Shown: positions 11,438 through 50,803 of the stretch, piece by piece
How the letters are laid out: every line of letters starts with the position of its first letter
Position numbering within the stretch: the first letter of the stretch is position 1
Assembly: GCA_965649825.1 (NCBI GenBank)
Contig: OZ287705.1
Coordinates: forward strand, 507,978 to 571,977
From: Penicillus capitatus
Lineage: Eukaryota > Plantae > Chlorophyta
DNA: 64,000 bases
Reading direction: 5' to 3'
Notes under the pieces: model-generated
What the model saw: only the letters and a program-made list of their open reading frames with translations
The model's database searches: none
Told to the model about the DNA's origin: nothing
Made by a program: the position numbers and the translations under genes

Positions 11438-11763
11438 GTCACTGTCGGAACGCGAAAGGTCGCTCCGCTGCGAAAGAAGTACTCGCGGCTGGACGGAGCT
11501 TCAAGCAGCACGGGTCGCTGTCTGGTCTCTTTTCAGCGATCTGGCCGTACGAGAAACGGACGCCCGAGGTTTCCTCTCGGAAACATCCTCCTCGAATGTG
11601 GCGAAGGGTCGCCTGTAGTTGTCCGTACATCTGCACGACATCTCGGACAGCCCGCAATTTCAATTTCGCAACGGAGTGTCGGTTTTCATTTGAACTTCGC
11701 AATCGAAGCAGTGAAACGGAGTTTGGCCCTTACGGTGTCTCTGGTGTCTGCACTCGCGGAAAC

Positions 11764-14257: not shown

Positions 14258-17042
14258 TCATGCGTTCTTCGTAGAAGGAGACAACAAGGACTCGAGTTCA
14301 GATACAAGCGAATCATAACAGTCACTCTCGAGACATATGACGTCATAGGGAGTATGACCGTCTTTGTCCTTGACCGATTTGGATGCGCCGTTATCAACCA
14401 GTGCCTGTGACATATTGGACAACTACATCCAGGATCAGAGAGAATGTGCGACGTACGGTTACGGTATAAGCATCTCCTTCCTTTGCTGCATAATGAAGTG
14501 GAGTCTGTCCTCTGTTGTCCGTCGCTTCGATGTCTGCGCTCTCTTGGAGGAGATCCTACGACGGCGGTGGTCGTTATTCTTACGAGACGGCGAGGATTGT
14601 ATTAACGGACTTCTACGGTTTGAACGTTTCCGTGCAGCGCTGCCCTATGAAGCGGAGTTTGCCCTTCGTCATTCTTTGCCTCGATATCTGCGCCCTTCTT
14701 AATGAGGAACTACGCCGACAGTCATTGCTCTCGTGAGACGGCGAATGTTGCAACGACGGCGGACCTTTGCGATGTCCTCTTTGCCTTCGTCTGCTGCCAC
14801 ATGAAGCGGGGTCCATAAGTTATCATCCGTCGCATCGACCTCTGCGCCTTTTTGAAGGAGAATCTACGGCGGCGGCGGTCGTTATTCTTGCGAGACGGCG
14901 AAGGTTGCATTAACGGACTTCTACGGTTTGAACGTCACCGAATCGTGCCGCTGCCTTGTGTAGCGGAGTTTGTCCTTTAACATCCTCTGCAGCGATATCT
15001 GCGCCCTCTCGAAGGAGAATCTACGCCGACGGTTATAACTCTCGCGAGACGGCGAGGGCTGTCAACGAACCTTCACGGATTCAGATTCTCTATAATATGC
15101 TGCCAAATGAAGTGCAGTCCATCCCTCATTGTCTGACGCCTTAATGTCAGCGCCTTCTTTAAGGAGAACCTACGCCGACGACCGTTCGTCGCGGGACAGT
15201 AAAGGATTGCGTCAGCAGACCTCCATGAATTCGACGGGGTGGTATATCGCTGCCTTGTGAAGCGAAGTTTTTCCTTCATCGTCCTTTGCATCGATATATG
15301 CGCCTTTTTGAAGAAGAATCTACGCCGACGGTTATAACTCTCGCGAGACGGCGAAGGTTGCGTCAAAGAACTCTTGCGGCTTCGGCGTCTCCGTACAGTG
15401 CGGCCCTTTGAAGTGGAGTCCATCCCTCATTGTCCGTCGCCTCAATATCTGCGCCTTCTTGAAGGAGAATCTACGCCGACGGTCATTATTCTCTCAGGAC
15501 GGCGAGAATTGCATTTACGGACCTTTACGGCGTCGTTTTCTCCGTACCTTGCTGCAAGATGAAGTGGAGTCCATCCATCTTTGTCCTTCGCCTCAATGTC
15601 TGCGCCTTCTTTAAGGAGGATCTACGCAGATGGTCGATATTCTCGCGAGACGGCGAATGTTGCAACGACGGACCTTTGCGATGCCCGTTTTGCCGACCTC
15701 TACTGCCACATGAAGCGGCGTCATTCCAGCAACATCCTTCGCCTCAATATCTGCGCCTTCTTGAAGGAGAATCTACTCCGGTGACTGTTCGTCACGGGAC
15801 GGTAAAGGACTGCGTTAGCAGACCTTTAGAGATTCGACCATTTCGAACAGCGCTGCAATATGAAGCGGGGTCCATCCGAATATATCCTTCGCCTCCGTAT
15901 CGGCGCCTCCTTGAATGAGAAGCTACGCCGACGGTCATTACTCTCGTGAGAAAACGAATGCTGCATCTAAGAACTTTTGCTGGTTCGATGTTTCCGTACA
16001 GTGCTACCCAATGAAGCGGAGTCCTTTCTTCCTTATCCTTCGCCTCAACGTCTGCGCCTTCTTGAAGGAGAATCTGCACCGATGACTGTTCGTCACGGGA
16101 CGGCAAGGGACTGCGTTAGCAGACCGCAGACCTTTAGAGATTCGACGCTTTCGTACAGTGCTGCAATATAAAGCGGAGTCCATCCCGCATTATCCTTCGC
16201 CTCAATGTCTGCGCCTTCCTTAAGGAGGATCTACGCCGACAGTCGTTATTCCGGCGAGAAGGGAAAAGTTGCAAGGGTTGACCTTTATGATTTCGACATC
16301 TCCAAACTCTGCAGCTGCGTGAAGCGGAGTCCGTCCACCTTTGTCCTTGGCCTCGATGTCCGCGCCTTGGTCAAGAAGATCCTGCGTTCGGAGCTGTCCA
16401 ACTTGGGAATTCGAGTAGAGTTATCCACACCTTCACGCGTTGTACATCCCCACTCCTAGCTGCCTCATGAAGGGGAGTCCCTCCGTCGTCCACTGAAAGC
16501 CATCCGTTAATAACGACAGTCCAGTTGGCTTTTCCTTGATCATGTGCGCTCTTACACAGTAACAGCGTTTCGTCGCGTCGCGTTGTTGACGCAGCACTCT
16601 ACCTGGTAAGGCTTCCGAGTAACTTCGCCGCTCTGCACAAAACCATGACGCCAGTTTCCGCCGCGGGTTAGTGTACGTAGTTTGTTTACTTGTTTGAACT
16701 TCTGGTCCGAGGCTTCGGAGTTGTCGATTCCTACGAAGCACGACGACCGAGCATGCGCGCAACAGCAAACACGTGTCTCGTTACCTCCGTTGCGCGTTCC
16801 GTCAATGTTCTGTAGGTGGCCCATCGGAGCCGCCATTTAGTAAAATCGCAGAGCAACAGGAGCCTTACCGAGAATCTTAACGGGAAGGAGTCGACGGACG
16901 CGTCGTCGTGAGGGAAGTCTGCGGCGCAGCAAGGCATCACCGTCGACACAGATGCATGGACGACGGTACCGCGGCTGCTTGTTGACGGGCGCGGACCAAG
17001 GAGCAGAAGGCAGAGCCACAAGCTGAAGGCAACCAGCTTCAT
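14258..17042 (-). CDS. ANK-B: secreted ankyrin-repeat protein (signal peptide, micro-exon linker, N-cap + 13 internal repeat exons, Cys-containing C-cap, no anchor)
   Basis: ATG 17042 ([24 protein letters not shown]). Repeat exons of 99-102 nt (e.g. 16381-16283, 16230-16132) with consensus [27 protein letters not shown], separated by ~50-58 nt phase-0 introns that mostly end CGTAG. Terminal exon [27 protein letters not shown] (TGA 14260-14258). Confidence 0.9.
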
Positions 17043-21239: not shown

Positions 21240-22290
21240 TCAACGTTGCCCGTCCGATGCGCGATCATTCCTTGACGCCGTGCACCAGCAGCGGAAGATC
21301 GCGTAACAGATGATGATCTCCGTTATTATCCAGAAACCGGTGAGGACGCCGTCGTCATCGGCAGCCAGCAGAGACAGGAGAACCGACTGGGTATCTCCGG
21401 AGCAATCCGCCTCGCTGTAGGCACACACATTGTCGTACGGCGTCCTCCCATAGAAGTCCTCCGCATCCTTGGATGCGCCCGCCTCGAGCAGAGCCTGTGA
21501 TGGTCGCCTTCTCCGCTCAGCACCGGACAGCAGAACGAACGTCTCACCAGAACAATCTCCACGCGTCCAGTTGCCGCTGCGTAATGAAGCGGCGTCAGTC
21601 CTTTGCGATCTGTCGCTTCAACGTCTGCCCCAACGCCGAGCAGCATCTCCAAGACATGTGCATTTGGCATGTCCTCTCACAAATCGGCGCTCACCTTCAC
21701 CGCGTCCGTACTCCCAGACACGATCGCGACGTGGAGCGGCGTCATCCGATCGCCGTCCGTTGCTTCGATATTGGCGCCGGCATCGAGCAGAACCTGCAGA
21801 AGGCGGTTACACTCGGGAAACCATCTCGCACTTGGAGACGGACCTGCACCACCTCCGCGTCTCCAGACGCTGCTGCATCAAAGAGAGGCGTCCTTCCCGA
21901 GTCGTCCGTCGCTTCGATGTTGGCTCCCTCGTCGAGCAGGGCCTTCATCGCAGGAATCACTTTCCCAACGCCGCGCGCTCACGCGTCGTCACTTGCTTTC
22001 ACGTCCTTCAGGCTTCCATCCCGAGCCGCCTCGTGAAGCTTTGTCCTTAGGCCGTTCTTGAGCACAGGGTGCTTCGCACCTCCCTCGAAGGGGAGCTGCG
22101 TTCGCAGCTGTTGGAGGAAACCCTCATCCGACTCGCCGTTCTGCTCTTCCGCGGACAGCCTTGGCCCTTCTACGTCGACAAGCTTGGTCAAGTCGTGGGA
22201 TGGCTTTTCGGCTTCACCCTGACTGGCGGATGCCGAGCGTAGGACGAGAAGGAACAGAAGCCACGCGCGGAGAACGGCACGCTTGGTCAT
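21240..22290 (-). CDS. ANK-E: type I membrane protein (signal peptide, ~5 ankyrin repeats, TM helix, short tail)
   Basis: ATG 22290 (MTKRAVLRAWLLFLLVLRSASA). Exons ALLDEGANIEATDDSGRTPLFDAA.., VLLDAGANIE..TPLHVAI.., MLLGVGADVE..TPLHYAA... Terminal exon TPYDNVCAYSEADC...GVLTGFWIITEIIICYAIFRCWC...GQR*. GC donor at 21996. Confidence 0.85.
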
Positions 22291-24335: not shown

Positions 24336-24529
24336 GAAACGAGTCGATCGCTTCCAGTCTCGACGAGTCCAAGCCAATAGACAACATAAAGGGAAATCTA
24401 TTTCATGTCGGCCCCTGCGTCGACGTTTGCACTAAACTCGATGAGAACTTGCAGGAGCGGCGATTTTTCGAAGAACCCTTCACTCTCGTTGGAGACTCGC
24501 AGGAACCATTACTAAGATCTCTTACTTGA

Positions 24530-25525
24530 CTGCGACGAGTAACAGTTCCCGTCCTTTGTCGTCGCGCGCTTCGATGTTCGCCTCCTCTTCGAGCAGAACC
24601 TGTAAAGGCTTCTTCTGCGCGCAAAAAGTCCATCTGTCCAAGTGGAGGCTTGCTTTCGCCATTTCGATGTCCGGGATCGCCGTTGCGTGATGCAGCGCCG
24701 TCCAGCCTCTCTCGTCAGCCGCCTCAGTTTTTGCGCCTCCGCGGATAGGACCTCCACAAGCGACACTCCTTGCGAGCATCCCCCATACCCGAGATTCACT
24801 TCGCATTCTTCGTCCGCCCAGCAAACACTGCTTGGTGAAGCGGCGTCTGTACTTGTCTATTGATTGCTTCGATGTTCTCGCTCCAATCAAGAAGAACCTG
24901 GACGGACCGCGTCTTGAACGGACGGAACTCTTCACATCAGCGCGAGACTTACGGTCACTATCTCCGTGTCTTCTCTCCGCGCCGCAAACATGAGTGGCGT
25001 CTGTCCGCTGTCGTCCGCAGCCTCGACATCGACGCCCCCTTCGAGCAAAGCCTGAGAAACCGACAACGCAACGGAACTCCCCGTACGGTTCACGACGACG
25101 AATTTTCACCACTCTTGCGCCCCCGTGAACTGCTGCGCAGTGCAGTGGCGTCGGGCCCTTCTCGTCTGTCACCTCAATGTCAGCATCTGTGAAGAGCAGA
25201 ACCTGTGCGGGCAGTCACGTCATCGTCAACGACCCTGGCTGCACATTCAAACACACCTTTACATCTTCCACTCTTCCTTCTCATGACACCTAGTACAGCA
25301 GCGTCGCTCCATCACCGACGCGCACGGCGAGGTTGGCCTCCAGGAACTGAGAAGGCAGTCTGCTTCGGCGATTCTACGTTGCGGTTCGCACCTGGTAGTC
25401 TCCGCAAAAGCAGCACGCTCGACGGCGTGCGAAATGCTTCAACCAGTACGGCCACGACTGCCAAATTTCGGCGCTGGAAGGAGAAGGATACACAGACACG
25501 CCGCGTCAAGCAGAGGGCGTTTCAT
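24530..25525 (-). pseudogene. ANK-F: decayed signal-peptide ankyrin-repeat paralog
   Basis: ATG 25525 (MKRPLLDAACLCILLLPAPKFGSR) and four internal repeat exons. Lesions: in-frame TAG (25292-25290) and TGA (25283-25281) in the N-cap exon, AT instead of GT at the donor 25103, and a 1-nt loss at the donor near 24799. No typical TPYD..C C-cap. Confidence 0.7.
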
Positions 25526-28132: not shown

Positions 28133-31100
28133 ATGTGGGATCTCGAGTTCGCCGTCAACGCCACTACTGTGAAACGTTGCATCTGTCACGTCTGCTACGA
28201 GTGCCGCTTGCGTCATCGACGGCGTCGCTTCTTGGCAGAAACAATTGGATCGAGCATCACATTAATGTTTGGAGATTTAAACGATTTGAAGAGGAGTTTC
28301 CGGCTAATCTTCACGACAACCTGAGTTTCTCGCTCGTTTAAGTTCGGATTCGTCGTAAAGCTTTCTCAGTTGTTTGAAACGAATTAACGTCGCCTCATGC
28401 AAGTCGCGGGTTCGTTTTCTTTAAGTTACGGTTTTCCGCATCGGCGCTGCAGAGGGACGCGGGGCATCGGATGGAGTCGAGTACGCGTACGCGCTGAGCA
28501 CACACCTGTGGTACGGGGTCTACGAGGTCACCTTCTCCATTCCTCTTTCAGAATCCTAAAATTCGTCTTCGTCGCAGTGGCGAATCCACCGCTCGATGTT
28601 TGCGAAAGAAAGGGCGATGTTTTCGAGCAACTTCTCCGTGGGTGGCGACGAATGGTGAGTGTAACGACAGCGTAATGCATATGCGCCATGCGTCCGTGTG
28701 TTCTGACCAGGTGCATCTTCGCGAGGCATCTCGGCCGACGGAGGTTGGCAGCCGACTTGCAGTCGTGGTCGTCTACGCGAGTTCGAGCTCACTTCGCGCT
28801 CTCTCTTGTCAACCAGACAGACGAAAGGAAGAATCTCGTCAGAGGTGTGAAGTCGATTCACTGTCGACATCTTCTGAAGAGAAGTGTCTTCCCGCAGCCG
28901 GCTTCTATGATGATCTGCAGCGCGATGACAGTGGCGCTCGAGAGAGCGAACCCTTCTGCATGGCAGAGACTACCAAGGAGTCCTCGTCCGGATTTCTGAA
29001 GGAAGACTACTTTGTGCTGCGATTAAAACTGCGGATAAGAAGTTCATCCAACGAGTCTGTCACATTTGTCACTAAAGAAAGGACAGTGGTCTGCGAAGTA
29101 AGTGTTGGGAACGCGCATCCGAACCGTTGTGTGACGGATGGACGATGCTAGTGGAACATCAAGCATGCGTGGGAGCTGAATCCATGCATCGTAAGAACCG
29201 ATCGCTTCAGAATCCAAGGCAACGACATGTGAGTTGTGGACAGTACATTCCTTAACAATCGTTCTCACGTCTGCTGCTCAGGGAGTTGAGGTTGTGCAAG
29301 GAGGGAGGAGTTTTCGGTGTAGACGGTTTGAGCGTTCTTATTGCGAACATGAGCGGCGAGAATGCTTGCTTCGAGGGCGAAATCTGCTTCATACAAAGTG
29401 ATTTCTCTGCAGACAACAGCAATTCAGCTTTTTTCTGTCCTCGTCGGGTTCTTCTAACCCTTCTGTTCAGAGTTTGTGGAGCAGATCAACGTCGGCGATG
29501 CTAAGGGATGGGTCCGATACTTCATAGAGAAGGGTTTGTCAGAAGAGCCTTCTTCGGCGGCGGAGGACGACTGGTCGGAGGAACTACACTTCATAGAGAA
29601 GGGTTTGTCAGAAGAGCCTTCTTCGGCGGCGGAGGACGACTGGTCGGAGGAACTACACTTCATAGAGAAGGGTTTGTCAGAAGAGCCTTCTTCGGCGGCG
29701 GAGGACGACTGGCTGAACCTCTCTGTGAAGATCACCTTGCTCAGTGACGAGGGTTTTCGAAACGCACTGCCTTCAGTTCTCAGGCGACTTCCGATGCATC
29801 GTCTTCCCAAGATCGATACCGGTAATGAAGTCCGACACCAAGGTACCGACGGATTTTCAAGAACGGCAAACATCTTGATCGCTTTATGGCAGGCGGCGTT
29901 GGATGCATTCATCTGGTCGATCATTACTACAGCCTGACGACAAATAAGTGGTTTGCGCGATATGAAGTGAGAGATTCAAGGTCTCCATTTGACTGCAATG
30001 GAGGCTTGTGTTCGAACAGTGGTTTGTGCACAAATCCTTCCTGACTCAAGACAGCGGATTGACAATCTCTGAAGGTGAATTCGAGGAGGTTTTCGTGTTT
30101 GGATGCGAGGATGAAGATCAATTGAACAAACAGATCTTTACAAACGCATTTAAAGTGGAAGATCGATTATGGTGCACAAGAAGGCATTCTTTTATTCTTC
30201 TGATGACTTGACGTGTTCGAGGTGTCTTGGAATGAAACGCGACGAAGACGGATATCTCTACGCTTGCCTTGTGTCGAAGAACGAGACTCGAGTGGAAGTG
30301 CAGTTTGGATTCAAGCTGGTGAATTCAAACAGCGAGCGCGGTGAACGCACCGGTAAGGAAGACAGAATCTGATCCGTCTTCGAAGTTGAGAGGTGTTTGT
30401 TAGGACGTCTTCACGAGTTCTCGTTCGTCGACGACTGTTGCGAGGACAAACTTCTTCCATGCACTGAAATAGCGTCACCAGATAATGGATTCCTGAGAGA
30501 TGACCACTTTCTTCTTCGTCTGGATATGAGAGTGAAACAGGAAGATAACGAATCGTGTGAAGTCACTGCGGACGGGAAAACTGCAACCTGCTTGGTATCC
30601 TCCATGTTTGACGCATTGTCCTGCTCTTAAGCTGGAGTCTAGTGGAGGTCAAGATTCCTGAAAGACATGAGTCCGTGGCGCGTTGCGACCAGAACCATCA
30701 GAATTGGAGACTCGGCACTGTGAGAGTCTTCCGAGTATTGCGACGTGCGTTTGGAGTTTCTTTTTGCGCAGGCAAGTCTTCTTTTATGCCAACGGTAAAA
30801 CTGGGTCGAGCGTTCCAGTCATCACCATACAAAAACAGAGCGCAGAAGACCTCGTTCGAATGTTCCTGGAAATCGACCTTGTCCGTCATGTCGACTCCGA
30901 CAGAATCAGAATGACGAGTGACTTTGTCTCCTATGTCTCTCTCGTCGACAGATGCAGTTTAGGCAGTCATCGTGTAATCCGTTGGAACCAGGAATTATGC
31001 GCAGACGGCCCGTTTACTCTGAGTCATCTGAAAGACGAAGCCTTGGAGCTTGTCAAAGATGGCTGGACGATCTTCGAGATCAAGATAAAGCTGTTTAACG

Positions 31101-34100
31101 AAGCAGAGTTCGACGAGGAGATGAGGCGCATATCAAGACATCTCGATCGGGGACATCAACGGTGGGAGGGGCCGAGCCCTCACGCACTGATGCACGTCGA
31201 AGGTCTGTCCTTAAACGACACCCTTCTGCTTCGATGGTACTTGAGTGCAGAGGGAAGTGGAGAAGATAATGGCTTTGCTTACACTTTCATTCTGAACAAG
31301 TACAAGTACTTCGCCACGTACGAGGTCCGTTCTGTCAAATTATCATATCTGCTTCGTGATCTGTATCTTCTGTCTAACAGTGTAAAGTGCCTCGAAGTTT
31401 TCTTCTGGAGAGGGAGAGATTCTTTAGTACTAATACGTTCGATATGGATGGCAGAGAATGGTTAGATTAACAATCGTCGACGACCTGCCTGAAGACAGTT
31501 TGTGTTTTCAGGCTTGTGACGATTCGACACGGGTACAGTGGACACCTGGCTGCTTACTTGTGGAACAAAGGCGTCACTCGGGCAACCGCTCACTACTGCT
31601 TTACCGTCGTCAGCAAGAAACGTGGCAACAGTGTATCCAGAGGTGATGGATCCACTGGAGATGGTAGTCATTCCAAAGACTGTTATTCTATTCGAAGGAG
31701 GCTTCGCAGAGATCTTTCCCGCTGTCTGCAAGGACAATCAAGGGTTCTCCGACCTCTGCGCCGCTGCGATAGTGAACGATCCGACTGAGGGATTCCTGGA
31801 AGGGATAAAGAAAGATTTCTTCCTCTTGCGCGCAGAGATCAGACTCAAGCTCCAAGACGACGAACGCTGGACAGTTTCCGTCAAAAGAAAGACAGCCACA
31901 TGCACCGTACGTTTGACTTCTTCTTCGAAGCACAACGATGTTTGACATTTGCAGTGGAAGCTGAAGGGACTGCCAAGTCTGTGTCCAACAATATTGTCAT
32001 CTGAGTTCTTCAATATTAGAGAAACCAAGTGGTGTAGCGATATCTTCTGGCTCTAACCTCGTCCAGCTGCTTGATGTGCGTGTGCCTTTGCAGGAGGCTG
32101 GCACTAGGGCCGAAGGGAAACAGCTCGAACTCTCACAACACCAGTCTTTACCTCTTCAATTGTCAAGATCACTCTGTATGCGTGAGGACTGAGTTCCGCG
32201 CCTTAAATCACAAATTGGCCAAGAAGACTTCTGCAGACGAAGTTAGAAGTCAGCATGCTCTTCATTCAATAAAAGCTCGTCCATAAACTTGTTCTACAGA
32301 ATTTACCGAGATCATCGAAGGGTACAGAATGTCAGGCTTCTCTAAGTTTCTGACAGACGACCAGTTGACGGACGAATCACTCGGATTCCTGAAAAAGGGC
32401 TGGATTACATTGACTGCGACAGTCACCCTCCTCGATGTCGATCAGGTGCCGCAGTGCGGGTATTGCCGATTAGACCCAACGTGCTCCGTGCGTCACGGCA
32501 ACACGTAAGACACTCCCTCTTTCTTCCACAATCCACTGATGCTCCACTGCACTGCCAGAAAACACCTGTGCTACTGCACCAAATGCGCCAAGAAGCTGAA
32601 GGAGTTGCTGCTTGATGGGCAGGAGATCAAGTGCCCTGTGTGTGAGCAGTTAGTGGAGAGAGTCATCATGAACGACGGTCCCTACTTCGAAAGATGTCCC
32701 ACATGCCTCATCGACCCCATATGTGCCGTCAGACACGGCAACACGTAGTGCTGTCACCATCGCGCGTTGTGTCGCATGTCTGGCTGTATCAGGAAACACC
32801 TCTGCTACTGCACGGAATGTGGCAAAGAGCTTTCCAGGAGACTGAGGGGTAGAGTCATTCAGGACTGCGTCGTCAGAACGGCGTGCCCAAAGAAAATATC
32901 GCCCGTGGAGAAGACGACATCGAAATGTCACGTGTGCGGTGATGACAATCCAACCTGCTCAGTGCTGCACAGATCCACGTAGGATTGACTACATAAACAC
33001 TGATAAACTTGTTGCGTACGATGATGTTCAGGGAGCACGTTTGCTACTGCCAGCTCTGTGCATGCAAAGAGTTTATGAAGGCGCTTGCGAAGAAGTGCAA
33101 GCTCAAGTGCCCAGTGTGTCAGAGAGAGGCGGACCGCATCGTCGTCAAGAATGCTGCTGACGACGAGCGAGTCCCCGCTCTGCGCAGATGCAAAAGCGCA
33201 GTGATCGTCCAGAAGAAACTGGATGAGGAGATCCTTGACATGCATAGAGCCGTGGTGCCAGCACAGCAAGTGTCATCGAGTCAGACTGTTGCTGAAGGCG
33301 GACGGAGTAAACAGAAGGATTTAGCGGTGTCCAGATATAACGAAACGATGTCTGCTATCAAGAAGCTACAGGACGGGACTTTCTTTATCCACACAGCCAA
33401 AGTCCCAAGTCAGCAAGAGTCACCGAGTCAGACAGTTGCCGACAGAAAACAATACACGGAGAGGCGTTTAACGCTGGGCAGATACATGAAAGCGTTGTCT
33501 GCTTCCAAGAAGCTAGTCGATGTGATTTTGGACTACTGTGGGGTCGAGGTCCAACTTCAGCGAGAGTCATCGAGCCTGACCGTCGCGGAAGGCAGTCAAG
33601 ACAAAGAGACATACTCAGTGATGAAGTTGTGCGAGGAAGCAATGTCCACTCTAGAAGAAATGTCAGAGGCGTTGTTGGGCAACTGCGACGTCGAGATCCC
33701 AGACCACCAAGAGTCAATGAGTCAGATGGCCGCTGAAGGCAAACAAGACAAGCAGGCGCAGACGGAAGACTCAAAGAAGGGCACATACGAAAAAACAAAG
33801 GCTGCTTTCGGTAAGCTGTTTGAGGCTATCTCGGCCTCCACTGAAGTCGGCACTCCAGTCCAACAGACGCCATCCGATCAGACTGTCATCGAGGACACAT
33901 GGACTCTGCGACATGCCCCGCCGCTACATAGGTGTGAGAGTGCAACGTTCTCCTGGGATAAACAATGTCCGTTCTGCCCTTCGACACAAGACCTCGATCA
34001 TGAAAGCAGGTGTGTCTTTATTCGTTTGGCGAATTGTGTAGCACTGCGGCAGTTGCTGCAACAGGCATCTGTGTTACTGCATTAAGAGCAACAAGAAGAT

Positions 34101-35137
34101 TGTGAGGAAGTTCAAGGCCCGGGAGACACGCGTGTGTCCTTTCAAATTCTGCCGCAAGCAAGTCGACCGCGTCATCATAAATGCCGCTCCCTGGAAGCCA
34201 AGAATCGTCGAGGAAGAGATCAAGCAGTGCCTGCCGTGTAAGGCAAAGAAGGAGGCCACCAAGGCAGCAGAGCAGACGCAGAAGACCAAAGGCTCATCCG
34301 CCACGGCAAAGAAAGCAGCTTGCAAGTCTAAAGATAGCACACAGAAGACTAGAGGTTCGGCCTCTGAGATAAAGGAAAACGCAAACGAAGTAGACGACAA
34401 AACACAGAAGACGAAAAGCTCAAGCTCAGACGCAAAGGGAGAAAACTCCAAGGCAGCAGACACTGGACAGAAAACTAACATTTCTGCTCCTAAGGCGAAG
34501 GAAGACGTCAGAAAGTCAGGAGATCGCTCGAAGGAGAGCAAAGGTGCATCGTCAAAGGCGACGGGTTCTGAAACAGAAGCAGCAGTGCCCACATGCTCTG
34601 CCGTCCACGGAGACAACACGTAAGAGCAATCCCCACTATCCGCTCTAATCTTGCATCTTGCTGCACAGGAGACACAAGTGCTACTGCGATGCTTGTGCTC
34701 TGGCCGTGCTCAAGGACAGTCTGCGCAGTGGCAAGGCGATCAGGTGCCCGGTGTGTCGAGAGGTGGTCCATCGGATCATCATGCAGGACGCCTCGGACGA
34801 AAGGAAGCGTCTGGGGATGCGCCGATGCAAGAGCACCATGCTCGCCAGAGAGCTGCCACCCTCAGAGACGGCTGTCAGGAGGACGACCGAGAGGCTAGCG
34901 TTCGACGAAGACGTGCAGCAGATCGTCATCGAGGAGGTGTTGGACAAGGCACCTTCCAGACTGCGCCGATGCAAGAGCACTGGCGAGATCCCCGTCGTCG
35001 ATGCATCTGACAAGGCGCAAGCCTCGAAACTGCGCAGACGCAAGAGCTTCGCGGGAGGGCTAAACGTGGCAAACGATCTGGATGATGACGACTCATACAA
35101 GCTGCGCAGAAGCGAGAGCACAGATTTGCTTCTCTGA
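28133..35137 (+). CDS. MATH-RING-1: multi-exon protein with ~6 MATH/TRAF domains and ~5 Mdm2-type RING fingers (start approximate)
   Basis: Spliced MATH motifs, e.g. YE|WRIHRSMFAKERAMFSSNFSVGGDEW|CIF..RAHFALSLVNQ..KNLVR; ..GWVRYF..DDWLNLSVKITLL; ..NGFLRDDHFLLRLDMRV; ..VKDGWTIFEIKIKL; ..EGFL..FFLLRAEIRL; ..LGFLKKGWITLTATV. These are followed by CxxC..HGNT|xHLCYCxxCA..CPVC..V RING motifs (32450-34790) and a Lys/Ser-rich linker. TGA at 35137. Confidence 0.8.
29521..29712 (+). repeat. In-frame 69-bp (23-aa) tandem repeat, 2.8 copies, inside the second MATH domain
   Basis: FIEKGLSEEPSSAAEDDW(SEELH) units start at 29521, 29590 and 29659. The paralog has a single copy (LKEKDLSDKLSSAMEDGW, ~45427-45480). 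Confidence 0.95.
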
Positions 35138-35499
35138 ACATCTTTTTTTACTTCTCGTCAACTATCAATTCATTTCAAAACCCGGCTGCGGTCAGCAGCG
35201 CAACGCACACACTCACACATTATCTCTCTGACGAAGAAGCGAAGTTATGTGACATGTTCATTATCTGCGTGACATTGTATTGACGGCAGCATGCTTTGTC
35301 GTCATCAGTTTCTGAGTTTTGTTAAAGCATTGACCCTGCGGCGATGCTCTTCACAGACTTTCTATTTCATTCTTAAGGAACGATTGCGTTCTTCAGTCAT
35401 TTACGCCAATTCTTATAACAGTGATACCCTATGTTGTGCATTTGCCCTTTTAATACAGAAAGGTCCTCTTTCCTTGATCTCCCGTCCATCGCATGCAAC

Positions 35500-38237: not shown

Positions 38238-40259
38238 TCATGCGCTCTTCGCAGAGGGAGACAACAAGGACTCGAGTTCAGATCGAACACTCTCAGGACA
38301 AGATGCATAAAGATATTCACAGATGCAATCAAACGGAGTCTGACCAGAGAGGTCCTTAACCGACTTGGACGCGCCACCATTAATCAGTGCCTGTGCAATT
38401 GAACAACTAATTCCAGGATCTAAGCAAATCTGCAGGTACCTTTACGGTTTCAATCCTAGCGTGATCTGCTGCCAGATGGAGAGGCGACCTGCCGGCTGCG
38501 TTTTTGGCATCGATGTTCGCGTCACGGACAAGAAGGACCTTCGTTAACGATCATGCGCATTCATCATGAGACATCGAAGAGTGCATCGACGTACCTTTAT
38601 GGTCTTAAGTCTTCCGCCGCGTGCTGCCAAGTGAAGCGCACGATGTCCGTACTTGTCTTCGGCCTCGATGTCTGCGTCACCGTCAAGGAGGACCTTTGTC
38701 GACGGCCATTCTTTACGGACAGCGAAGGTTGCGTCATCGACCGACCTTTATGGCTTCGAATCTTCCGTCCTCTGCTGCCCAATGAAGTGGAGCCCTGCTG
38801 AATGTATGCTCCCTGGCCTCGGTGTCAGCGCCACGATCAAGGAGGACCTTTGTTGACGACCATTCTTTACGGACAGCGAAGGTTGCGTCGTCGACGGACC
38901 TTTACTACTTCGATTCTTCCGTCTATTGCTGCGAAATGAAGCGCACGCTGTCCGTACTTGTCTTCGGCCTCGATGTCTGCGTCACCGTCAAGGAGGACCT
39001 TTGTCGACGGCCATTCTTTACGGACAGCGAAGATTGCGTCGACGACCGACCTTAACGACTTCGCCTTTTTTTCCCCTTGCTGCCACATGAAGTGGAGGGC
39101 CGCTTAATGTATGCTCCCTGGCCTCAATATCAGCGCCACGGTTAAGGAGGACCTTTGTCGACGACCAATCTTTACGGACAGCGAAGATTGAGTCGTCGAC
39201 GGACCTTTACGACTTCGACTCCTCCGGTATCTGCTGCGAAATGAAGCGCACGCCATCCGTTCATGTCTTCGGCCTCGATGTCAGCGCCACGGTCAAGGAG
39301 GACCTTTATTGACGGTCGTTCTTTACGGACCGCGAAGGTTGCGTCGTCGACGGACCTTTACGACTTTGACTCTTCCGGCCGATGCCGCCAAAAGAAGTGG
39401 AGGACTGCGGTGTCCATAATCCTTGGCCTCGATGTTCGCGCCACCGTCCAGAAGGATCTTCGTTGACGATCCATTCACATTCATCATAAAGCATCGAAGA
39501 TTGCGGCGTCGAACGCACCTTTACGGCTTTAGCTTTTCCGGCGATTGCTGCCAAGTGAAGTGCAGTCCGGTGGTCTGAGTCCTCTCTTGCCTCGAGAGAT
39601 GCGCCTTCATCAAGCAGGTCCTAGGTTCGAAACTGTGCGACGCGGGAATTCGAGTAGACGCGCCGCCACCTTCACGTGTTTTGCTTTTCCTCTGAACGCT
39701 GCCTCATGAAGCGCGGTCCATCCGTCAACGCCGACATGTCTCTCGTGAGCTGTTCCTTTATTGAGCGCTCCCTTAGACGGTAATGACCATTTGCGGCTTT
39801 GAGACATAGAGGCTCCATTCACCTGGTAGGTTTCCAGAATTTCCACACAGCCCTGCTCAAAACATCAAGTTGTTTTTCCGCACGGGTAACCGTACCCCAG
39901 CCGTTCTTTGGATCTTTGGGTGCAAAGCTTCCTTTTGTTCGATCTCTAAACAGCGACAGCTGAGCGCACGGGGAGCAACATGCGCGTACTATCTTACCCT
40001 CATACGTGTCGTCTCCGTTCTAAGGAATTGGTCGTCGAAGTCACAGCCGCTTAGTCAAGTCGTTAGAACAGCATGTGTCCTACCTCAGATCTGAAGAAGA
40101 CGGAGTCGGCGAACGCTGCGTCTGTAACGAAGTCTGCTCAGCAGAAGACATCGCCTTCGACACAGATGCATGACCGACGACGGTACCGCGGCTGGCCCTG
40201 GACTTGAGCGGGGCGACGAGCAGAAAGCAGAGGCATGTGTGAAGAACGACGCACTTCAT
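38238..40259 (-). CDS. ANK-C: secreted ankyrin-repeat protein (signal peptide, micro-exon linker, N-cap + 8 internal repeat exons, Cys-containing C-cap)
   Basis: ATG 40259 (MKCVVLHTCLCFLLVAPLKSRASR), same 5' exon layout as ANK-A. Repeat exons VLLD(R/G)G/DADIEA.. are separated by ~52-nt introns ending AAG. Terminal exon ALINGGASK..TPFDCICEYLYASC..PSAKSA* (TGA 38240-38238). Confidence 0.9.
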
Positions 40260-44000: not shown

Positions 44001-47000
44001 ATGGCCTTTGTGGAAAGGAAGGCTCTTGAGGACCATTACTCCGTTCGCTTTCGTTCCGTGATTCTTCGTCTCCGCTCTCCCTCAGCTTCTACGCACATTC
44101 TAGTCCTCGCTGGCACCGCTTCCTGGCAGAAAAATCGGACCGAGTGTCACGTCGCATTTCAGATATTTAAAGGACTCGAAGAGGCTTCTCGGCGAGTCTT
44201 GGCGAACACCGGATTTCTTTCGATTGCTCAATCCCAGCTTCATCGTGCAGTTGCTCAGTCTCTTTAAACGATTTCCAGCGTCCCTTCATGCAAGTCACCG
44301 GTTCGTCTTTCTCCCACTTACGGTTCCCGCATCGGTGCAGCAGAGGGGCGCCGGTCATCAAACGGAGTCGAATACTCCTACACGCTGAGCAGTCATTCGT
44401 GGTATGGGGTCTACGAAGTAACCGTGTCCATTCGTGCCGTCAGAATCTCAGCTTTCATCTCTGTCTCAGTGGCGCGTACATCGCTCTATGTTTGATAAGG
44501 AGAATCAGAGTATAGCGTCGAAGACTTTCACTGTCGGCGGCGAGAGATGGTAAGTCGAGCGCAACGACCTGCGGCCCTCATTCGTTTTACTCTGGACAGG
44601 AAGCTTTTCGCCAAGCATCTGGGCGAAAAGAAATTGATCGTCGATTTAGCTTCGCGAGGTTTTTCGCCTGTTCAGGCTCACTTTTCAATCACTCTTGTCA
44701 ACCATAAAGGCGAAAGAAAGAATCTGGTCAGAGGTATGTTTGCATAACCTCATCGAATACATTTTGCAGAGACGTGTGGTCTTGCAGCAAAGTTCTTCGA
44801 TCGTCGGGGCCATGGTAGTAATCATCAGGAGGTCGATCCCTTCCACATGGCATCGGTCATTGACGATACCTCACTTGGATACCTAACAGAAGATTTCTTC
44901 ACGCTGCGATTGGAATTAAGGATAAGGAGTCCAGATAACGAGGCTTCCAGATTCGTCATTCCTCGGACGATTCAGACTCTAAAAAGGACAGCGTCGTGCG
45001 AAGTAAGAGTCGAGAAACCCTACCGAACGCCAAGAGTGGATGATGTTAGTGGAACATCCAGCATGCGTGGGAGACGAGTCCATCTATCGTAAGAACGGAT
45101 CGTTTCAGAATCGCAGGCTGCAACATGTGAGTTGTGAAAAATACAGACTTCCGTCCCGTAACAATCATTCTCATGTCTGCTGCTCAGGGAGTTGAGGTTA
45201 TGCAAGGAGGGAGGAGGTTACGGTGCATACGATCTGAGCGTTCTTATTGCGAACATAGGTGACCGAAATGCTTTCGTTGAGGGTGAAATCTGCCTTATAA
45301 GAAATGATTCATCTGCAGACAACAGCAATTCAAGTTCTTTCCGTCCTCGTCGAGTTCTTCTCACCCTTCTGTTCAGAGTTTGTGGAGCAGATCAACGTAG
45401 GCGCTGCTAAGGGATGGGTCCGATACTTAAAAGAGAAGGATCTGTCGGACAAATTGTCTTCGGCTATGGAGGACGGCTGGTTGAACCTATCTGTGAAGAT
45501 CACCTTGCTCAGCGACAAGGATTTTCGAAACGCACTGCCTTCAGTTCTCAGACGACTTCAGCTGCATCGTCTTCCCAAGATCGATACCGGTAATGAAGTC
45601 CGACATCAAGGTACCGACAGTTTTTCAAGAACGGCAAGCACTTTGATCGCCATATGGCAGGCGGCGTTGGATGCATTGATGAAATCGATCATTACTTCAG
45701 ACTGACAACGAATGAGTGGTTTGCCCGATATGAAGTGAGAGATTCAAGGTCTTCATCTGACTGCAATGGAGGCTTGTGTTCGAACAGTGGTTTGTGCATC
45801 GATCCTTCCTGACTCAAGACAGCGGACAGATCTTCACAAACGCGTTCGAGGTGGAAGACCGACTCTGGTTCAAAGAAGACACTCTTTCGTTCTGCTGATG
45901 ATCTGAGCGTTTGAGGTGTATCGGAATAAAGCGCGATAAAGACGGATATCTCTACGCTTGGTTTTTATCGAAGAACGAGACTCCAGTGGAAGTGCAGTTT
46001 GGATTCGAGCTGGCGAATTCGAAAAGCGAACACAGTAAACGCACCGGTAAAGGAGACAGAATTTGTACATTCTCGAAGTTGAGAGATGTTTGATAGGACG
46101 CCTTCACGAGTTCTCGTTCGTCGATGACTGCTGCGAAGAAAAACTTCTTAAATGCACCGAGATAGCGTCATCAGATAATGGATTCCTGAGAGATGACCAC
46201 TTTCTTCTTCGTCTGGATATGAGAGTGAAACAGGAAGATAACGAATCGTGTGAAGTCACTGCGGACGGGAAGACTGCAACCTGCCAGGTATCCTCTATGT
46301 TCGATGCATTGTCCTGCTCTCAAGCTGGAGTCTAGTGGAGGTCAAGATTCCTGAAAGACATGAGTCCGTGGCGCGTTGCAAGCAGAACCATTAGAATTGG
46401 AGACTCGGCACTGTGAGTTTCTCTCGAGTATCATAGCGCCCGTTTGAAGTTTCTTTGTAAGTAGGCAACTGTTCTTCTGGGCCAACGGTTTAACTGGTTC
46501 AAGCTTTCCACTCATTGGTATTAAAAATCAGAGCGCAGAAGACCTCGTTCGAATGTTCGTGGAAATCGACCGTGTCCGTCGTGTCGACTCCAACAGAATC
46601 AGATTGACGAGTAACTCTGTCTCCCGCGTCTCTCATCGACAGGTGCAGTTCAGGCTGTCATCGTATACTCCGTCGGGATTATGAAAACTTGATAGCCAAC
46701 TTAGACACTTCGAGCCAGCTGGAGGACGAAGCCCCAGAGTTTGTCAATGATGGCTGGACGATCTTCGAGATCAAGATAAAGCTGTTTGATGGAGCAGAGT
46801 TCGATGAGGAGATGAGGCGTGTATTAAGACATCTTGATCTGAGGCCTACTCGATGGGAAAAGCCTGATCCCTGCGAACTGATGCACGTCGAAGGTCTGTC
46901 CTACACGATGTCTTTCTGCTTCGATGGTCACTGAGTGCAGAGGGAAGCGGTACATACATGGACATTCCTTTCGCTTTCGTCCTGAACAAGTACACATACC

Positions 47001-50000
47001 ACTCCACGTACGAGGTCTCTTCTGTTAAACCGTCATCTCAGCTGCGTCGAAATCTCTTTCTCCTCTTTTACAGTGTGAAGTACCTCGAAGTTTTCTGCTA
47101 GAGAGGGAAAGATTCTTTGGTAGTAATACCTTTGATCTGTACGGCAGAGAATGGTTAGATCCATAATCGTCGATGACCTGCCAGAAGACGGTTTGCGTTT
47201 ATAGGAGTGTGGTGATTCACCACAATCACGATGGACGGCTGGATGCTTACCTGTGGAACAGGGGCGTCACTCGGGCAACTGCTCATTACTGTTTTACTAT
47301 CGTCAACCGAGAACATGACAAGAGTTTAGCTGGAGGTGATGGATCAGCTGGAGATAGTAGTCATTCAAAGACTGTTATTCTGTTCGAAGGATACTGTGAA
47401 GAGTTATTTCCGGTTGTGTGCGAGGACGCTTTGGGATGCATGCTCTGCCCTGCCGCGAGAGTGAACGATCCGGCTGAGGGATTCTTGGAGAGTGGCTACT
47501 TCCTCGTGCGCGCAGAGATCAGGCTCAAGCTCCAAGACAACGAGCGCTGGACAGTTTCCGTTGAGCGAAAGACAGCCACATGCGTCGTACGTTCGACTTC
47601 TCCTTTGAAGCACAACGATGTTTGACATCTGCAGTGGAAGCTGAAGGGACTGCCATGTCTGTGTCCGTCAGTACTGTTGTCCGAGATCTTTAACATTGGA
47701 GAAACCAAGTGGTGCAAAACGACATCTTCTGGCTCTGCCGTCGTCGAGTTACATTCACGTTTGTTTTTGTAGGAGGTTGGCACTTTTGCCGAGTGGAAAC
47801 ACGTCGAACTGTGACAACATCGGTCTCTACCTTCAGAATTGCCAAAATCACCCTATCCGCGTGAGAACTGAGTTTCGCGCCTTGCATCACAAATCGACAA
47901 AGAAGACTTCGGAAGACAAAGTTGAAAGTCAGCACGCTCTTCAGTGGACTTTCATCGCTTAATGGATTCTACAGAATTCAACGAGAGCATCGCAGCAAAC
48001 AGCAACCGGGGCATTCCCGAGCTTCTAACGAGAGACCAGTTGACGGACGAGTCACTCGGATTCCTGGATAAGGGCTGGATCACATTGACTGCTAGAGTCA
48101 TCCCCCTCGATGTCGAACGCGTGCCGCAGTGCGGGTATTGCCGAATCGATCCAACATGCTCCGTGCGTCACGGCAACACGTAAGGCACTCTCTCCTTAAC
48201 AACCCACTGATGCCCTATTGCCAGAAAGCATTTGTGCTACTGCACCAAATGCGCCAAGAGGCTGAAGGAGTCGCTGCTTGATGGGCAGGAGATCAAGTGC
48301 CCTGTGTGCGAGCAGGTAGTGGAGAGAGTCATCATGAACGACGGTCCCTACTTTGAAAGATGTCCCACATGCCTCATCGATCCCACCTGCGCCGTCAGAC
48401 ATGGCAACACGTAGAGCTGTCACCATCACTCGCTCTTCCACATGTCTTTCTGCATCAGGAAACACCTCTGCTATTGCACGGACTGTGGCAAAGAGCTTGC
48501 CAGGAGACTGAGGGGCAGAGTCATTCAGGACTGCGTCGTCAGAACGGCGTGCCCAAAGAAGATATCGCCTGTTCAGAAGACGACATCGAAATGCAATGTG
48601 TGTGGTGCCGACGGTGCAAACTGCTCAGTGCTACACGGATCCACGTAGGATCGATCACAGAAACGCTCGATGAGTTTTCGCATGCATTGATGTTCAGGGA
48701 ACACACGTGCTACTGCCAGGTCTGCGCATGCAAAGAATTTGCAAAGGCGCTTGCTACGAAGTGCAAGCTCAAGTGCCCAGTGTGTCAGAGAGAGGCGGAC
48801 CGCATCGTCGTCAAGGATGCTGATGACGATGAGCGCGTCCCAGCTCTGCGCAGATGCAAAAGCACAGAGACCGTTCGAGAGAAACTCGACGAGCAGACTC
48901 TTGACATGCATAGAGCCGTGGTCCTAGCACAGCGAAAGTCCTCGAGTCAGATCGCCGAAGGAGGACGGAGAACACAGAAGGATTTAGTAGAGTCCAGATT
49001 TAAAGAAACGTTGTCTGCTATCAAGAAGCTGCATAAACGGACTTCCTTTGTTCAAAAAGCCGAGGTCCCGAGTCAGCAAGAGCGATCCAGTCAAACAGTT
49101 ACCGACGGAAAACAATACTCGGAGAGGTGTTTAACGCTGTGCAGATACATGGAAGCGTTGTCTGCTTTCAAGAAGCTAGTTGATGTGATTTTAGACTACT
49201 GTGGGGTCGAGGTCCAACTTCAGCGAAAGTCATCGAGCCATGCCGTCGCTGAAGGCAGTCAAAACAAACAGACATACTCAGTGATGAAGTTGTGCGAGGA
49301 AGCAATGTCCACTCTAGAAGAAATGGCAGAGGTGTTGTTATGCAACTGCGACGTCGAGATCCCAGACCACCAAGAGTCAATGAGTCAGATGGTTGCTGAA
49401 GGCAAACAAGACAATCAGACGCAGACGGAAGACTCAAAGAAGGGCACATACGAAAAAACAAAGGCTGCTTTCGGTAAGCTGTTTGAGGCTATCTCGGCCT
49501 CCACTGCGGTCGGCACTCCAGTCCAACAGACGCCATCCGATCACACTGTCATCGAGGACACATGGACTCTGCGACATGCCCCGCCGCTACAGAGGTGTGA
49601 GAGTGCAACGTTCTCCTGCGATAATCAATGTCCGTTCTGCGAGACACCCTCAGACATCGATCATGAAAGCAAGTGCGTCTCTTCTTGTTTGGCAAGTTGT
49701 CGCACTGCAGTATTTACTGCGGCAGGCATCTCTGCTGCTGCATCAAGAGCAACAAGAAGATTGTCAAGAAGTTCAAAGCTCGGGAGACGCGCTTGTGTCC
49801 TTTCCCATTCTGCCGCAAGCAAGTCGATCGCGTCATCATGAATGCCGCTCCGTGGAAGCCAAGAATCGTCGAAGCAGAGATCAAAGAGTGCTTGCCGTGT
49901 AAGGCAAAGAAGGAGGCCAGCAAGGCAGCAGAGCAGACGCAGAAGACCAAAGGCTCAACTTCCACGGCGACGGAAGTACCTTGCAAGGCAGATGATAACA

Positions 50001-50803
50001 CACAGAAGACTGAAGGTTCAACCTCTGAGATAAAGGAAAACGTAAACGAGGTAGAAGCCGAGACACAGAAGACTAAAACATCAACCGCAAAGCCAAAGGG
50101 AGAAGCCTCGAAGGCAGCAGACACTGCAAAGAAAACAAGAAGTACTGCTCCTAAGGCGAAGAAAGAAGTCAATAAGTTAAGAGATCGCTTAAAGAAGAGC
50201 AAAGGTGCATCGTCCAAGGCGACAGATTCTGAAGCAGAAGCAGTAGTGCCCACATGCTCTGCCGTCCACGGAGACAACACGTAAGAGCAATCAATCTCTA
50301 GCATCCATTCCAATCTCGCACCCTGGTGCACCAGGAGACACAAGTGCTACTGTGATGCTTGTGCGCTGGCCGTGCTCAAGGAAAACCTGAGCAGTGGCAA
50401 GGCGATCAGGTGCCCGGCGTGTCGAGAGGTGGTCCATCGGATCATCATGCAGGACGCCTTGGACGAAAGGAAGAGTCTGGGGATGCGCCGATGCAAGAGC
50501 GCCATGCTCGCCAGAGAGCTGCCACCGTCAGAGACGGCTGTCAGGAGGACGACCGAGAGGCTCGTGTTCGACGAGGACGTGGAGCAGATCATCATCCAGG
50601 AAGTGTTGGACAGGGGACCTCCCAGACTGCGCCCCTGCAAGAGCGCTGCCGAGTTCCCCGTCGTCGATGCATCTGACAAGACGGACTCCACGAAACTGCG
50701 CAGACGCAAGAGCTTCGCGGGAGGGATGAACGTGGCAAACGATCTGGATGACGACGACCCATGCAAGCTGCGCAGAAGCGAGAGCACAGATTTGCTTCTC
50801 TGA
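44001..50803 (+). CDS. MATH-RING-2: paralog of MATH-RING-1 (~6 MATH + ~5 Mdm2-type RING; start approximate)
   Basis: Colinear exon-for-exon with 28133-35137. Indels between the copies fall in introns or are in frame (72-nt deletion near 45827; no 69-bp triplication). Same C-terminus RRSESTDLLL* at 50803. Confidence 0.8.

Follow-up and report, generated by a model that had tools for sequence, protein, structure and literature searches.

Does a single gene join an array of MATH domains to an array of Mdm2-type RING fingers in one polypeptide, and if so, what might its product do? This question was raised by a locus, here designated copy 1, within a 64,000-nucleotide (nt) stretch of Penicillus capitatus DNA (contig OZ287705.1, forward-strand positions 507,978 to 571,977). 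This whole stretch is hereafter called the window, and positions are counted within it unless another locus is named. An earlier note, made from the letters of the sequence, had proposed at 28133-35137 a giant protein with about six MATH domains and about five RINGs. Our analysis agrees with that description of the polypeptide, as a spliced model, Pfam scans, searches of PDB sequences, and profile comparisons all indicated six MATH-like domains followed by five RING units in one chain. Judged by its open frame and pattern of substitution, 28397-35137 on the + strand is an intact, selectively constrained gene.

Gene model of copy 1

We built a comparative spliced model of copy 1 by placing exons by hand, guided by a nucleotide alignment to a related metagenomic locus (L001) and by the threefold internal repeat of the gene. 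The model at 28397..35137 (+) contains 27 exons and a coding sequence of 5355 nt, and it yields a 1784-amino-acid (aa) product with no internal stops. The parts of the model and the tandem paralogue used for comparison are as follows:

28397-28409, 28453-28526, 28578-28654, 28711-28844, 28898-29097, 29152-29228, 29282-29397, 29471-29842, and 29893-29966, + strand: exons 1 to 9 of copy 1
30020-30171, 30222-30352, 30404-30594, 30643-30719, 30772-30917, 30963-31202, 31251-31324, 31381-31460, and 31512-31630, + strand: exons 10 to 18 of copy 1
31710-31906, 31955-32031, 32094-32248, 32300-32504, 32559-32744, 32793-32978, 33032-34009, 34065-34619, and 34669-35137, + strand: exons 19 to 27 of copy 1
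35135-35137, + strand: stop codon of copy 1
28212..28396, + strand: conserved non-coding upstream stretch that aligns in copy 1, copy 2, and L001 and ends at a conserved ATG
44288..50803, + strand: copy 2, a tandem paralogue with 27 exons, 1725 aa, an intact open reading frame (ORF), and the architecture of copy 1

Evidence that the MATH and RING arrays belong to one gene came from exons 22 to 27. Exon 22 (32300-32504) encodes "...GFLKKGWITLTATVTLLDVDQVPQCGYCRLDPTCSVRHGNT", in which the last strands of the third B-type MATH domain run uninterrupted into the front half of RING1. Exons 23 and 24, both exactly 186 nt, each encode the second half of one RING and, after a 12-aa spacer, the first half of the following one, and exons 25 to 27 continue the chain by bridging back and front halves of neighboring RINGs. 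Because each of these exons splits RINGs, no complete RING would be produced unless all of them were on one mRNA. The arrangement speaks strongly against separate MATH-only and RING-only genes, so that the single gene proposed in the earlier note holds at the level of the sequence.

All 26 introns of copy 1, each 43-79 nt long, are bounded by GT and AG, as are all 26 in both copy 2 and L001. Intron lengths were strikingly uniform across the three genes (median of 50-52 nt, range of 42-79 nt), and the splice consensus outside GT...AG was weak in copy 1 as well as in L001 and in two further related loci, L003 and L004. Differences in exon length among copy 1, copy 2, and L001 were all multiples of 3; intron lengths varied freely. 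Between copy 1 and copy 2, identity was 84.4% in exons and 77.2% in introns. In-frame retention in all three genes is possible for none of the 26 introns, and although introns 14 and 15 keep the frame of copy 1, their counterparts in copy 2 disrupt it.

In the unspliced + strand from 28.1 to 35.1 kb, stop-free stretches are short and the frame changes every 75-200 nt. Each HGNT motif is followed by a GTAAG/GTAG...CAG intron of 48-54 nt, after which the frame continues as KHLCYC. The region is intron-dense eukaryotic DNA, with a G+C content of ~50% around copy 1. A bacterial reading of the region was rejected and a promoter and terminator scan considered irrelevant for this reason. On raw stop-to-stop ORF pieces, Pfam gave one weak RING match and one very weak MATH match. 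This nearly blank result arises because introns of ~50 nt cut the domains, so that splicing is required before domains can be recognized.

The ATG that copy 1 has at 28397 is also present in copy 2 and L001, and exon 1 adds only 13 coding nt. The 185 nt immediately upstream (28212-28396) carry 1-, 2-, and 4-nt insertions or deletions among the three loci and are probably a promoter or a 5' untranslated region. Similarity of copy 1 to its paralogues starts at ~28212, with none further upstream. Since position 28133 lies outside this conserved unit and frame-breaking insertions and deletions extend up to the ATG, we moved the coding start from 28133, where the earlier note had placed it, to 28397.

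An uncertainty of ~10-15 aa attaches to the model at the intron 7 donor and at intron 14. The intron 7 donor site has moved between copies (window 29398-29470, copy 2 45334-45376, and L001 6832-6904). The GTGATT donor of copy 1 corresponds to ATGATT or ATGACT in copy 2 and L001, which use a downstream GT of the same phase, making the exon longer by 10 codons in copy 2 and by 11 codons in L001 as modeled.

The MATH and RING arrays

From N to C terminus, the MATH domains, which are of the TRAF-C type, are ordered A1, B1, A2, B2, A3, and B3, forming three A+B double-MATH modules. As the earlier note had observed at ~28450, ~29900, and ~31250, each module is introduced by a "G-x-G..Y..L..YE|" exon. 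These exons are 74 nt each, lie at 28453-28526, 29893-29966, and 31251-31324, and each starts a MATH-A domain. We scanned the spliced protein in ten pieces with the Pfam MATH_2 model (PF22486; also PF00917), which has a gathering cutoff of 32 bits, and compared units with each other by hhalign, with the following results (E, expect value):

28453..29097, + strand: MATH-A1, aa ~22-166, exons 2-5; Pfam MATH_2 E of 2.3e-7 and 31.6 bits, just under the cutoff of 32
29152..29754, + strand: MATH-B1, aa 167-325, exons 6-8; hhalign to B3 with E of 2.5e-8 and probability of 95%
29893..30594, + strand: MATH-A2, aa ~372-537, exons 9-12; Pfam MATH_2 E of 8.1e-5 and 23.3 bits
30643..31108, + strand: MATH-B2, aa 538-660, exons 13-15; hhalign to B3 with E of 2.3e-6 and probability of 89%
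31251..31906, + strand: MATH-A3, aa ~709-848, exons 16-19; hhalign to A1+A2 with E of 3.2e-22 and probability of 99.5%
31955..32439, + strand: MATH-B3, aa 849-972, exons 20-22; Pfam MATH_2 E of 1.6e-10 and 41.8 bits

B3 is the only one of the six units to exceed the MATH_2 gathering score, and B2 is the most divergent. When compared with PDB sequences, a profile of the A-type family matched only MATH domains (SPOP at 4.6e-5 and USP7 at 0.01), as did a profile of the B-type family (SPOP at 1.3e-3). The hhalign alignments of A3, B1, and B2 to the recognized MATH units cover their full length. An exon pattern of 74, ~77-80, ~119-134, ~191-200, and 77 nt is repeated in each module with matching intron positions and phases; the second exon of module 2 in copy 1 is 152 nt owing to a 72-nt insertion. 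Together, hhalign and the repeated exon pattern make six MATH-like domains in three double modules a well-supported prediction, with A3, B1, and B2 assigned through internal homology only.

Two in-frame changes within the MATH array are specific to copy 1. In exon 8 (29519-29712), a perfect tandem repeat of 69 nt × 2.8 triplicates HFIEKGLSEEPSSAAEDDWSEEL within MATH-B1 and is missing from copy 2 and L001. As this repeat is private to copy 1 and 100% identical between units, it either arose very recently or is an artefact of assembly. The 72-nt insertion in exon 10 (~30052-30123) adds 24 aa (SGLTISEGEFEEVFVFGCEDEDQL) to the first strands of MATH-A2 and was found in neither L001 nor copy 2.

Downstream of the MATH array, five RING units carry the HG(N)T-x-H-x-C-Y-C signature that the earlier note had reported:

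32455..32670, + strand: RING1, aa 978-1031, full C2H2C4 set, split by intron 22 after HGNT and followed by invariant NDGPYFER
32695..32904, + strand: RING2, aa 1040-1093, degenerate, with CVVRTAC in place of the last CxxC pair
32926..33146, + strand: RING3, aa 1101-1156, full C2H2C4 set
33966..34179, + strand: RING4, aa 1430-1482, degenerate, with CxVxH gone, Ser as the sixth ligand, and CPFKFC for CPxC (...CYCIKSN...)
34228..34783, + strand: RING5, aa 1499-1667, with CLPC, a K/S/T-rich insert at 34240-34584, and then CSAVHG...CPVCR

In Pfam, the RING1-3 segment scored 32.0 bits against zf-C3HC4_3 (PF13920; cutoff of 27) in two stretches. The C-terminal half of RING5 scored 16-18 bits against the same model (E of 0.002-0.01), under the cutoff. 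A phmmer search with RING1-3 against all PDB sequences found the RINGs of Mdm2 (1.6e-4) and Mdm4 (1.5e-3), with no other RING type significant in that search, and the alignment of RING1-3 with these two proteins shares C-x2-C, HG-T-H, CAKKLK, and CPVC. Across the whole spliced copy 1 protein, scanned in its ten pieces, MATH_2 and zf-C3HC4_3 were the only Pfam families detected.

To compare zinc ligands among relatives, we tallied them in copy 1, copy 2, L001, L003, and L004. In all five copies, the set of eight Mdm2-type ligands is complete in RING1, RING3, and RING5. RING2 is without the last CxxC pair in every copy, with three of the five (L001, L003, and L004) retaining one Cys there. RING4 has lost the CxVxH element and the sixth ligand in all five, with CPFxFC present. 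The C2H2C4 Mdm2-type feature with HGxTxH, which the earlier note had ascribed to the RINGs in general, therefore applies to RING1, RING3, and RING5 but not to RING2 and RING4. Likewise, the earlier note was right that the fourth RING is degenerate (CIKSN), but this RING is not the sole degenerate one. Complete RINGs thus alternate with incomplete ones, and because the defects of RING2 and RING4 are common to all copies examined, they are old.

Other features also recur along the RING array. A conserved [DE]R[IV][IV][MV] strand follows every RING, PYF after RING1 is invariant, and the alternating RINGs are 10-16 aa apart. A phase-2 intron interrupts all five RINGs at the identical point after HGNT, so duplication of a 186-nt exon unit gave rise to the array. 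The RING5 insert, ~115 aa in copy 1, lies between the first Cys pair and the rest of the domain and is shorter in L004. CLPC of RING5 is kept in copy 1, copy 2, and L001, and L004 has CVIC at this position.

We estimated the ratio of nonsynonymous to synonymous substitution rates (dN/dS) from three sequences, copy 1, copy 2, and L001. The ratio for the whole protein was 0.35-0.45 and remained below 1 throughout. It was lowest in RING1, RING2, and MATH-A2 and highest in MATH-B2 (0.5-0.78), the K-rich insert, and the tail. RING1 gave 0.16-0.17, and RING1 and RING2 together spanned 0.10-0.36. The degenerate RINGs are themselves under purifying selection, with ratios of 0.10-0.36 for RING2 and 0.19-0.28 for RING4.

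Two further segments accompany the RINGs:

33192..33953, + strand: RING3-RING4 linker, ~4.5 repeats of ~50 aa, each with a VPxQQESSSQTVAEG consensus and then a more variable segment
34784..35134, + strand: C-terminal tail with the basophilic Ser motifs MRRCKST, LRRCKST, LRRRKSF, and LRRSEST

The linker repeat peptide is VPSQQESPSQTVA, and we presume its VPxQQESSSQTVAEG repeats to resemble TRAF-type MATH ligands. Linker length varies widely within the family, from only ~55 aa in L004 to an additional 855 nt in L001. This extra sequence of ~855 nt (L001 ~10800-11665, opposite window 33580) is in frame, and much of it consists of eight copies of a 33-aa repeat (ESLSQTSAGGSR..RLIDLATRTSNERRPARRNR). 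The Ser motifs of the tail are invariant or nearly so in the three-way alignment and are present in L003 and L004. Similar motifs also occur after RING3 and before RING4, for a total of five to six LRRCKS-like motifs, on which basophilic kinases or 14-3-3 proteins might act.

Copy 2, related loci, and surroundings

Copy 2 starts 9 kb downstream of the end of copy 1. The two copies are 70-88% identical by blastn and 75.6% identical in protein, and the exon model projected from copy 1 onto copy 2 is fully open. A scan of the window for related segments found none apart from copy 2. Outside the window, the related loci come from two ENA metagenome assemblies, ERZ25074695 and ERZ26696514. A word-seeded search with a rough model matched one protein, P0001, called as an ORF in prokaryote style on a metagenome contig of ENA, and the locus of this protein is L001. 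Along window 28221-35140, L001 is colinear with copy 1 and 74-78% identical to it in nucleotides, including introns, and the 27-exon ORF of copy 1 is also open there. Simple orthology between L001 and copy 1 was considered and rejected, as L001 is about equally distant from both copies and its alignment with copy 2 extends further at either end.

The same layout of six MATH domains and five RINGs was present in L003 and L004. A more divergent and shorter relative, L002 (~5970-10600 of contig ctg339926 in ERZ25074695), has ~30-37% aa identity and combines three MATH modules with about three RINGs, CPxC being absent from the last. Its layout indicates that the arrangement of multiple MATH domains with multiple RINGs is older than the close paralogues. 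Of the remaining loci, L005 has an ORF identical to one of copy 2, and L006 and L003 are on one 1.23-Mb contig, ~100 kb apart.

A word-seeded profile search of 5.8 billion proteins returned 22 matches, two of which were the window's own ORFs. All 22 related ORFs are unnamed, without Pfam annotation, and located on ENA contigs of up to 1.8 Mb. A HMMER scan of 1.84 billion representative proteins with a profile of the RING exon found only fragments of the family itself and two unrelated repeat proteins. A second word-seeded search of the 5.8 billion, limited to large proteins (981-3122 aa) and made with MATH-B3 and RING1-3, gave no match even at E ≤ 10, and scans of JGI metagenomes and IMG/VR found no relatives. 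The earlier note had recognized no described protein with this many MATH and RING domains, and our searches of 5.8 and 1.84 billion proteins, which are weak for short domains and did not extend to a domain-architecture database, likewise returned no annotated example. Outside the window, the family is so far known only from unannotated metagenome contigs. By sequence relationship, copy 1 and copy 2 are tandem paralogues and belong to an expanded, lineage-restricted family. Its clustered paralogues, turnover of the intron 7 donor site, and large in-frame gains and losses of repeats fit a diversifying, possibly conflict-driven family.

Several other genes lie in the window. An intron-free ORF of 1035 aa at 53498-56605 (-) contains Chlamydia-PMP repeats and a right-handed beta-helix. 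ORFs of the Chlamydia-PMP/beta-helix Pfam families also flank the family member in L003 (386-3946 and 18346-20261, both -), and the presence of like Pfam families near copies in both places suggests a conserved neighborhood. Exons for the uL30 (L7) ribosomal protein are at 57595-57849 and 57962-58174 (+), directly followed by a Methyltransf_22 (FkbM-type) ORF at 58249-59295 (+; E of 1.3e-11). An exon for a proteasome alpha7-type subunit at 60660-61070 (-) is closest among solved structures to the spinach protein (160 bits versus 135 for human and yeast). Toward the right end of the window, where the uL30 and proteasome exons are located, G+C content is higher (57-61% versus ~50% around copy 1). 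Among the chains compared, those of plants and mammals gave the uL30 and proteasome exons their highest scores, with clearly lower ones for apicomplexans, ciliates, kinetoplastids, and ascomycetes. Ankyrin-repeat ORF fragments occur on both strands at 1631-2207, 6637-7029, 12338-12856, 16374-16598, 21243-21617, 24525-25214, and 38870-39103, and ankyrin-repeat genes thus appear frequent in this region of the genome. Rfam and tRNA scans of the window found no rRNA, no tRNA, and nothing else.

Predicted function and alternative explanations

By its predicted domain content, the copy 1 protein is outside the Mdm2, TRAF, TRIM37, SPOP, and Mind bomb families, with which it has only domain-level features in common, their defining accessory domains being absent. 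The closest likeness to Mdm2 and Mdm4 is the RING subtype itself (C-x2-C...C-x-V-x-H-G-x-T-x-H-L-x-x-C-x-x-C-A-K-K-L-K...C-P-V-C, then a hydrophobic strand). In addition, the mix of complete and incomplete RINGs recalls the dimer of active Mdm2 and inactive MdmX (PMC7190642). In contrast to these proteins, Pfam detected no SWIB/p53-binding domain, acidic region, or RanBP2 zinc finger in copy 1. Furthermore, copy 1 carries five tandem RINGs within the chain, each split by a phase-2 intron after HGNT and fused to MATH domains, whereas Mdm2 has one RING at its extreme C terminus.

TRAF proteins (TRAF2/3/5/6 and protist TRAF-like proteins) likewise combine a RING with a MATH domain in one ubiquitin ligase (E3), the MATH domain being a peptide-motif receptor. 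In copy 1, however, the order is reversed, with MATH domains N-terminal and RINGs C-terminal, the RING subtype differs, six MATH domains replace one, and TRAF zinc fingers and a coiled coil are absent by Pfam. TRIM37 is also a RING E3 ligase carrying a MATH domain, but it consists of one RING, a B-box, a coiled coil, and one MATH domain, whereas copy 1 has no B-box or coiled coil by Pfam and its shared domains are multiplied.

The MATH domain of SPOP is the nearest solved MATH by sequence. The MATH domains of copy 1 are probably substrate-binding units as in MATH-BTB proteins, families of which show lineage-specific expansions. Unlike those proteins, copy 1 has no BTB domain by Pfam; MATH-B3 passes straight into RING1 in exon 22, the predicted ligase module adjoins the MATH array in one chain, and no dependence on a cullin is implied. 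MATH-only proteins of plants and nematodes contain two to four or more MATH domains in tandem and also show lineage-specific expansions. They share tandem MATH domains with copy 1 but have no catalytic or RING module. Mind bomb proteins (MIB1 and MIB2) resemble copy 1 in having N-terminal substrate-binding modules and several C-terminal RINGs of the PF13920 type. One preprint ties MIB1 activity to the third RING and an adjacent coiled coil (bioRxiv 10.1101/2024.03.01.582834). Instead of MATH domains, MIB proteins have MZM/REP and ankyrin regions, and Pfam detected no MIB/HERC2, ZZ, or ankyrin domain in copy 1. The RINGs of MIB proteins also belong to a subtype other than the HG-T-H one of Mdm2 and show no alternation of complete and degenerate forms.

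Considering these features, we favor the reading that the product of copy 1 is a self-contained, multivalent RING E3 ubiquitin ligase, which we regard as reasonably probable on the domain evidence. In SPOP, TRAFs, and USP7, the MATH domain has a shallow groove that accommodates short linear motifs. The MATH array of copy 1 would similarly bind short peptide motifs, and its six consecutive domains would give high avidity for repeated motifs or oligomeric targets. The RING array would recruit E2~ubiquitin. Two papers describe Mdm2-type RINGs as recruiting UbcH5-type E2~Ub and being active only as dimers, with the Mdm2 RING dimerizing with itself or with catalytically inactive MdmX and the partner's C-terminal tail (Y489-F490-P491) supporting ubiquitin in trans (PMC7190642; PMC6465955). 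The same papers describe phosphorylation beside the Mdm2 RING as modulating activity (PMC7190642; PMC6465955), and phosphorylation of the copy 1 tail could be similarly regulatory. Because complete and degenerate RINGs alternate in copy 1, and because Mdm2-type RINGs work as dimers and tolerate an inactive partner, we propose that the RINGs pair intramolecularly as pseudo-heterodimers, R1·R2 and R4·R5. R3 might pair with R2 or dimerize between molecules. R5 would be the best catalytic candidate, as it retains Arg after the last Cys. The linker repeats, if TRAF-ligand-like, could mediate auto-inhibition or polymerization.

A number of observations weigh against this ligase reading. Three of the six MATH units (A3, B1, and B2) had no match on their own in Pfam or PDB searches. 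In copy 1, Arg directly after the last Cys is present in RING5 alone, with Glu or Gln in RING1 and RING3, and in RING5 of L001 this Arg is replaced by Gln. All five RINGs are internal, and none has a free Mdm2-like C-terminal tail. The 115-aa insert in the first loop of RING5 might block its folding. A single-sequence AlphaFold model of RING1-3 reached a predicted local distance difference test (pLDDT) score of 34 and was discarded. Finally, dN/dS values of 0.5-1.0 in MATH-B2, the K-rich insert, and the tail indicate weak constraint on parts of the protein.

Some of these observations would suit a non-catalytic scaffold or adaptor, in which the RINGs are zinc-stabilized interaction or oligomerization modules, the MATH array is an assembly platform, and ubiquitin is transferred by other enzymes or not at all. 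Degeneracy of RING2 and RING4 in all copies and the missing Arg in RING1 and RING3 are consistent with such a role, self-association would fit the presumed likeness of the linker repeats to TRAF-type MATH ligands, and the MATH-only proteins of plants and nematodes offer a precedent without catalytic domains. However, in every copy three RINGs have preserved both the CAKKLK...CPVC segment and the eight Mdm2-type ligands, constraint on the protein is strongest in RING1 and RING2, and inactive RINGs usually partner active ones. We thus consider a scaffold possible but unlikely.

A special case of the ligase reading is an immune-like or conflict-driven sensor ligase, comparable to the TRIM, TRAF, and MATH-BTB expansions, in which the MATH array of each paralogue would read another foreign or selfish target. 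The number of paralogues (two in the window, L001 to L006, and 22 ORF clusters), their tandem or clustered location, and recent in-frame repeat gain and loss would all fit this idea, as would the fairly high dN/dS (0.35-0.45), with MATH-B domains among the fastest. On this evidence, such a role is conceivable, but we hold it to be doubtful.

It is highly improbable that the long protein is an artefact of a hand-built model with a first coding exon of only 13 nt and two introns (14 and 15) in frame in copy 1, standing for several MATH-only or RING-only genes or for decaying pseudogene or repeat copies, since exon 22 joins MATH-B3 to RING1, the RINGs are split over exons that bridge neighbors, the 27-exon ORF stays open in all three genes (copy 1, copy 2, and L001), the layout recurs in L003 and L004, introns 14 and 15 break the frame of copy 2, and dN/dS is under 1 throughout.

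Returning to the multivalent ligase, copy 1 is a new architecture assembled from known parts rather than a new principle, since MATH and RING domains are both well known. Its unusual aspects are the position of MATH domains before the RINGs, opposite to TRAF and TRIM37; the multiplication of both modules, MATH to six and RING to five; Mdm2-subtype RINGs without any other Mdm2 domain; and the alternation of complete RINGs with others that degenerated long ago. Should RINGs of the same chain pair with each other, the protein would amount to a naturally occurring single-chain dimer of the Mdm2-MdmX type and a useful model of how inactive RINGs aid active ones. All relatives found are unnamed ORF fragments from prokaryote-style gene calls, so that intron-dense protist genes like copy 1 have been missed by annotation. 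A large clustered family with in-frame repeat gain and loss is a pattern known from immune-type ligase families. In the most speculative extension, which we offer only tentatively, the family may represent an unseen class of single-chain, "pre-dimerized" E3s that join paired Mdm2-type RINGs to a six-MATH receptor array. Such a class might constitute a fast-evolving family of innate-immunity or genome-conflict sensors in a poorly sampled eukaryotic lineage, with PxQQ linker repeats acting as built-in MATH ligands for auto-inhibition or polymerization.

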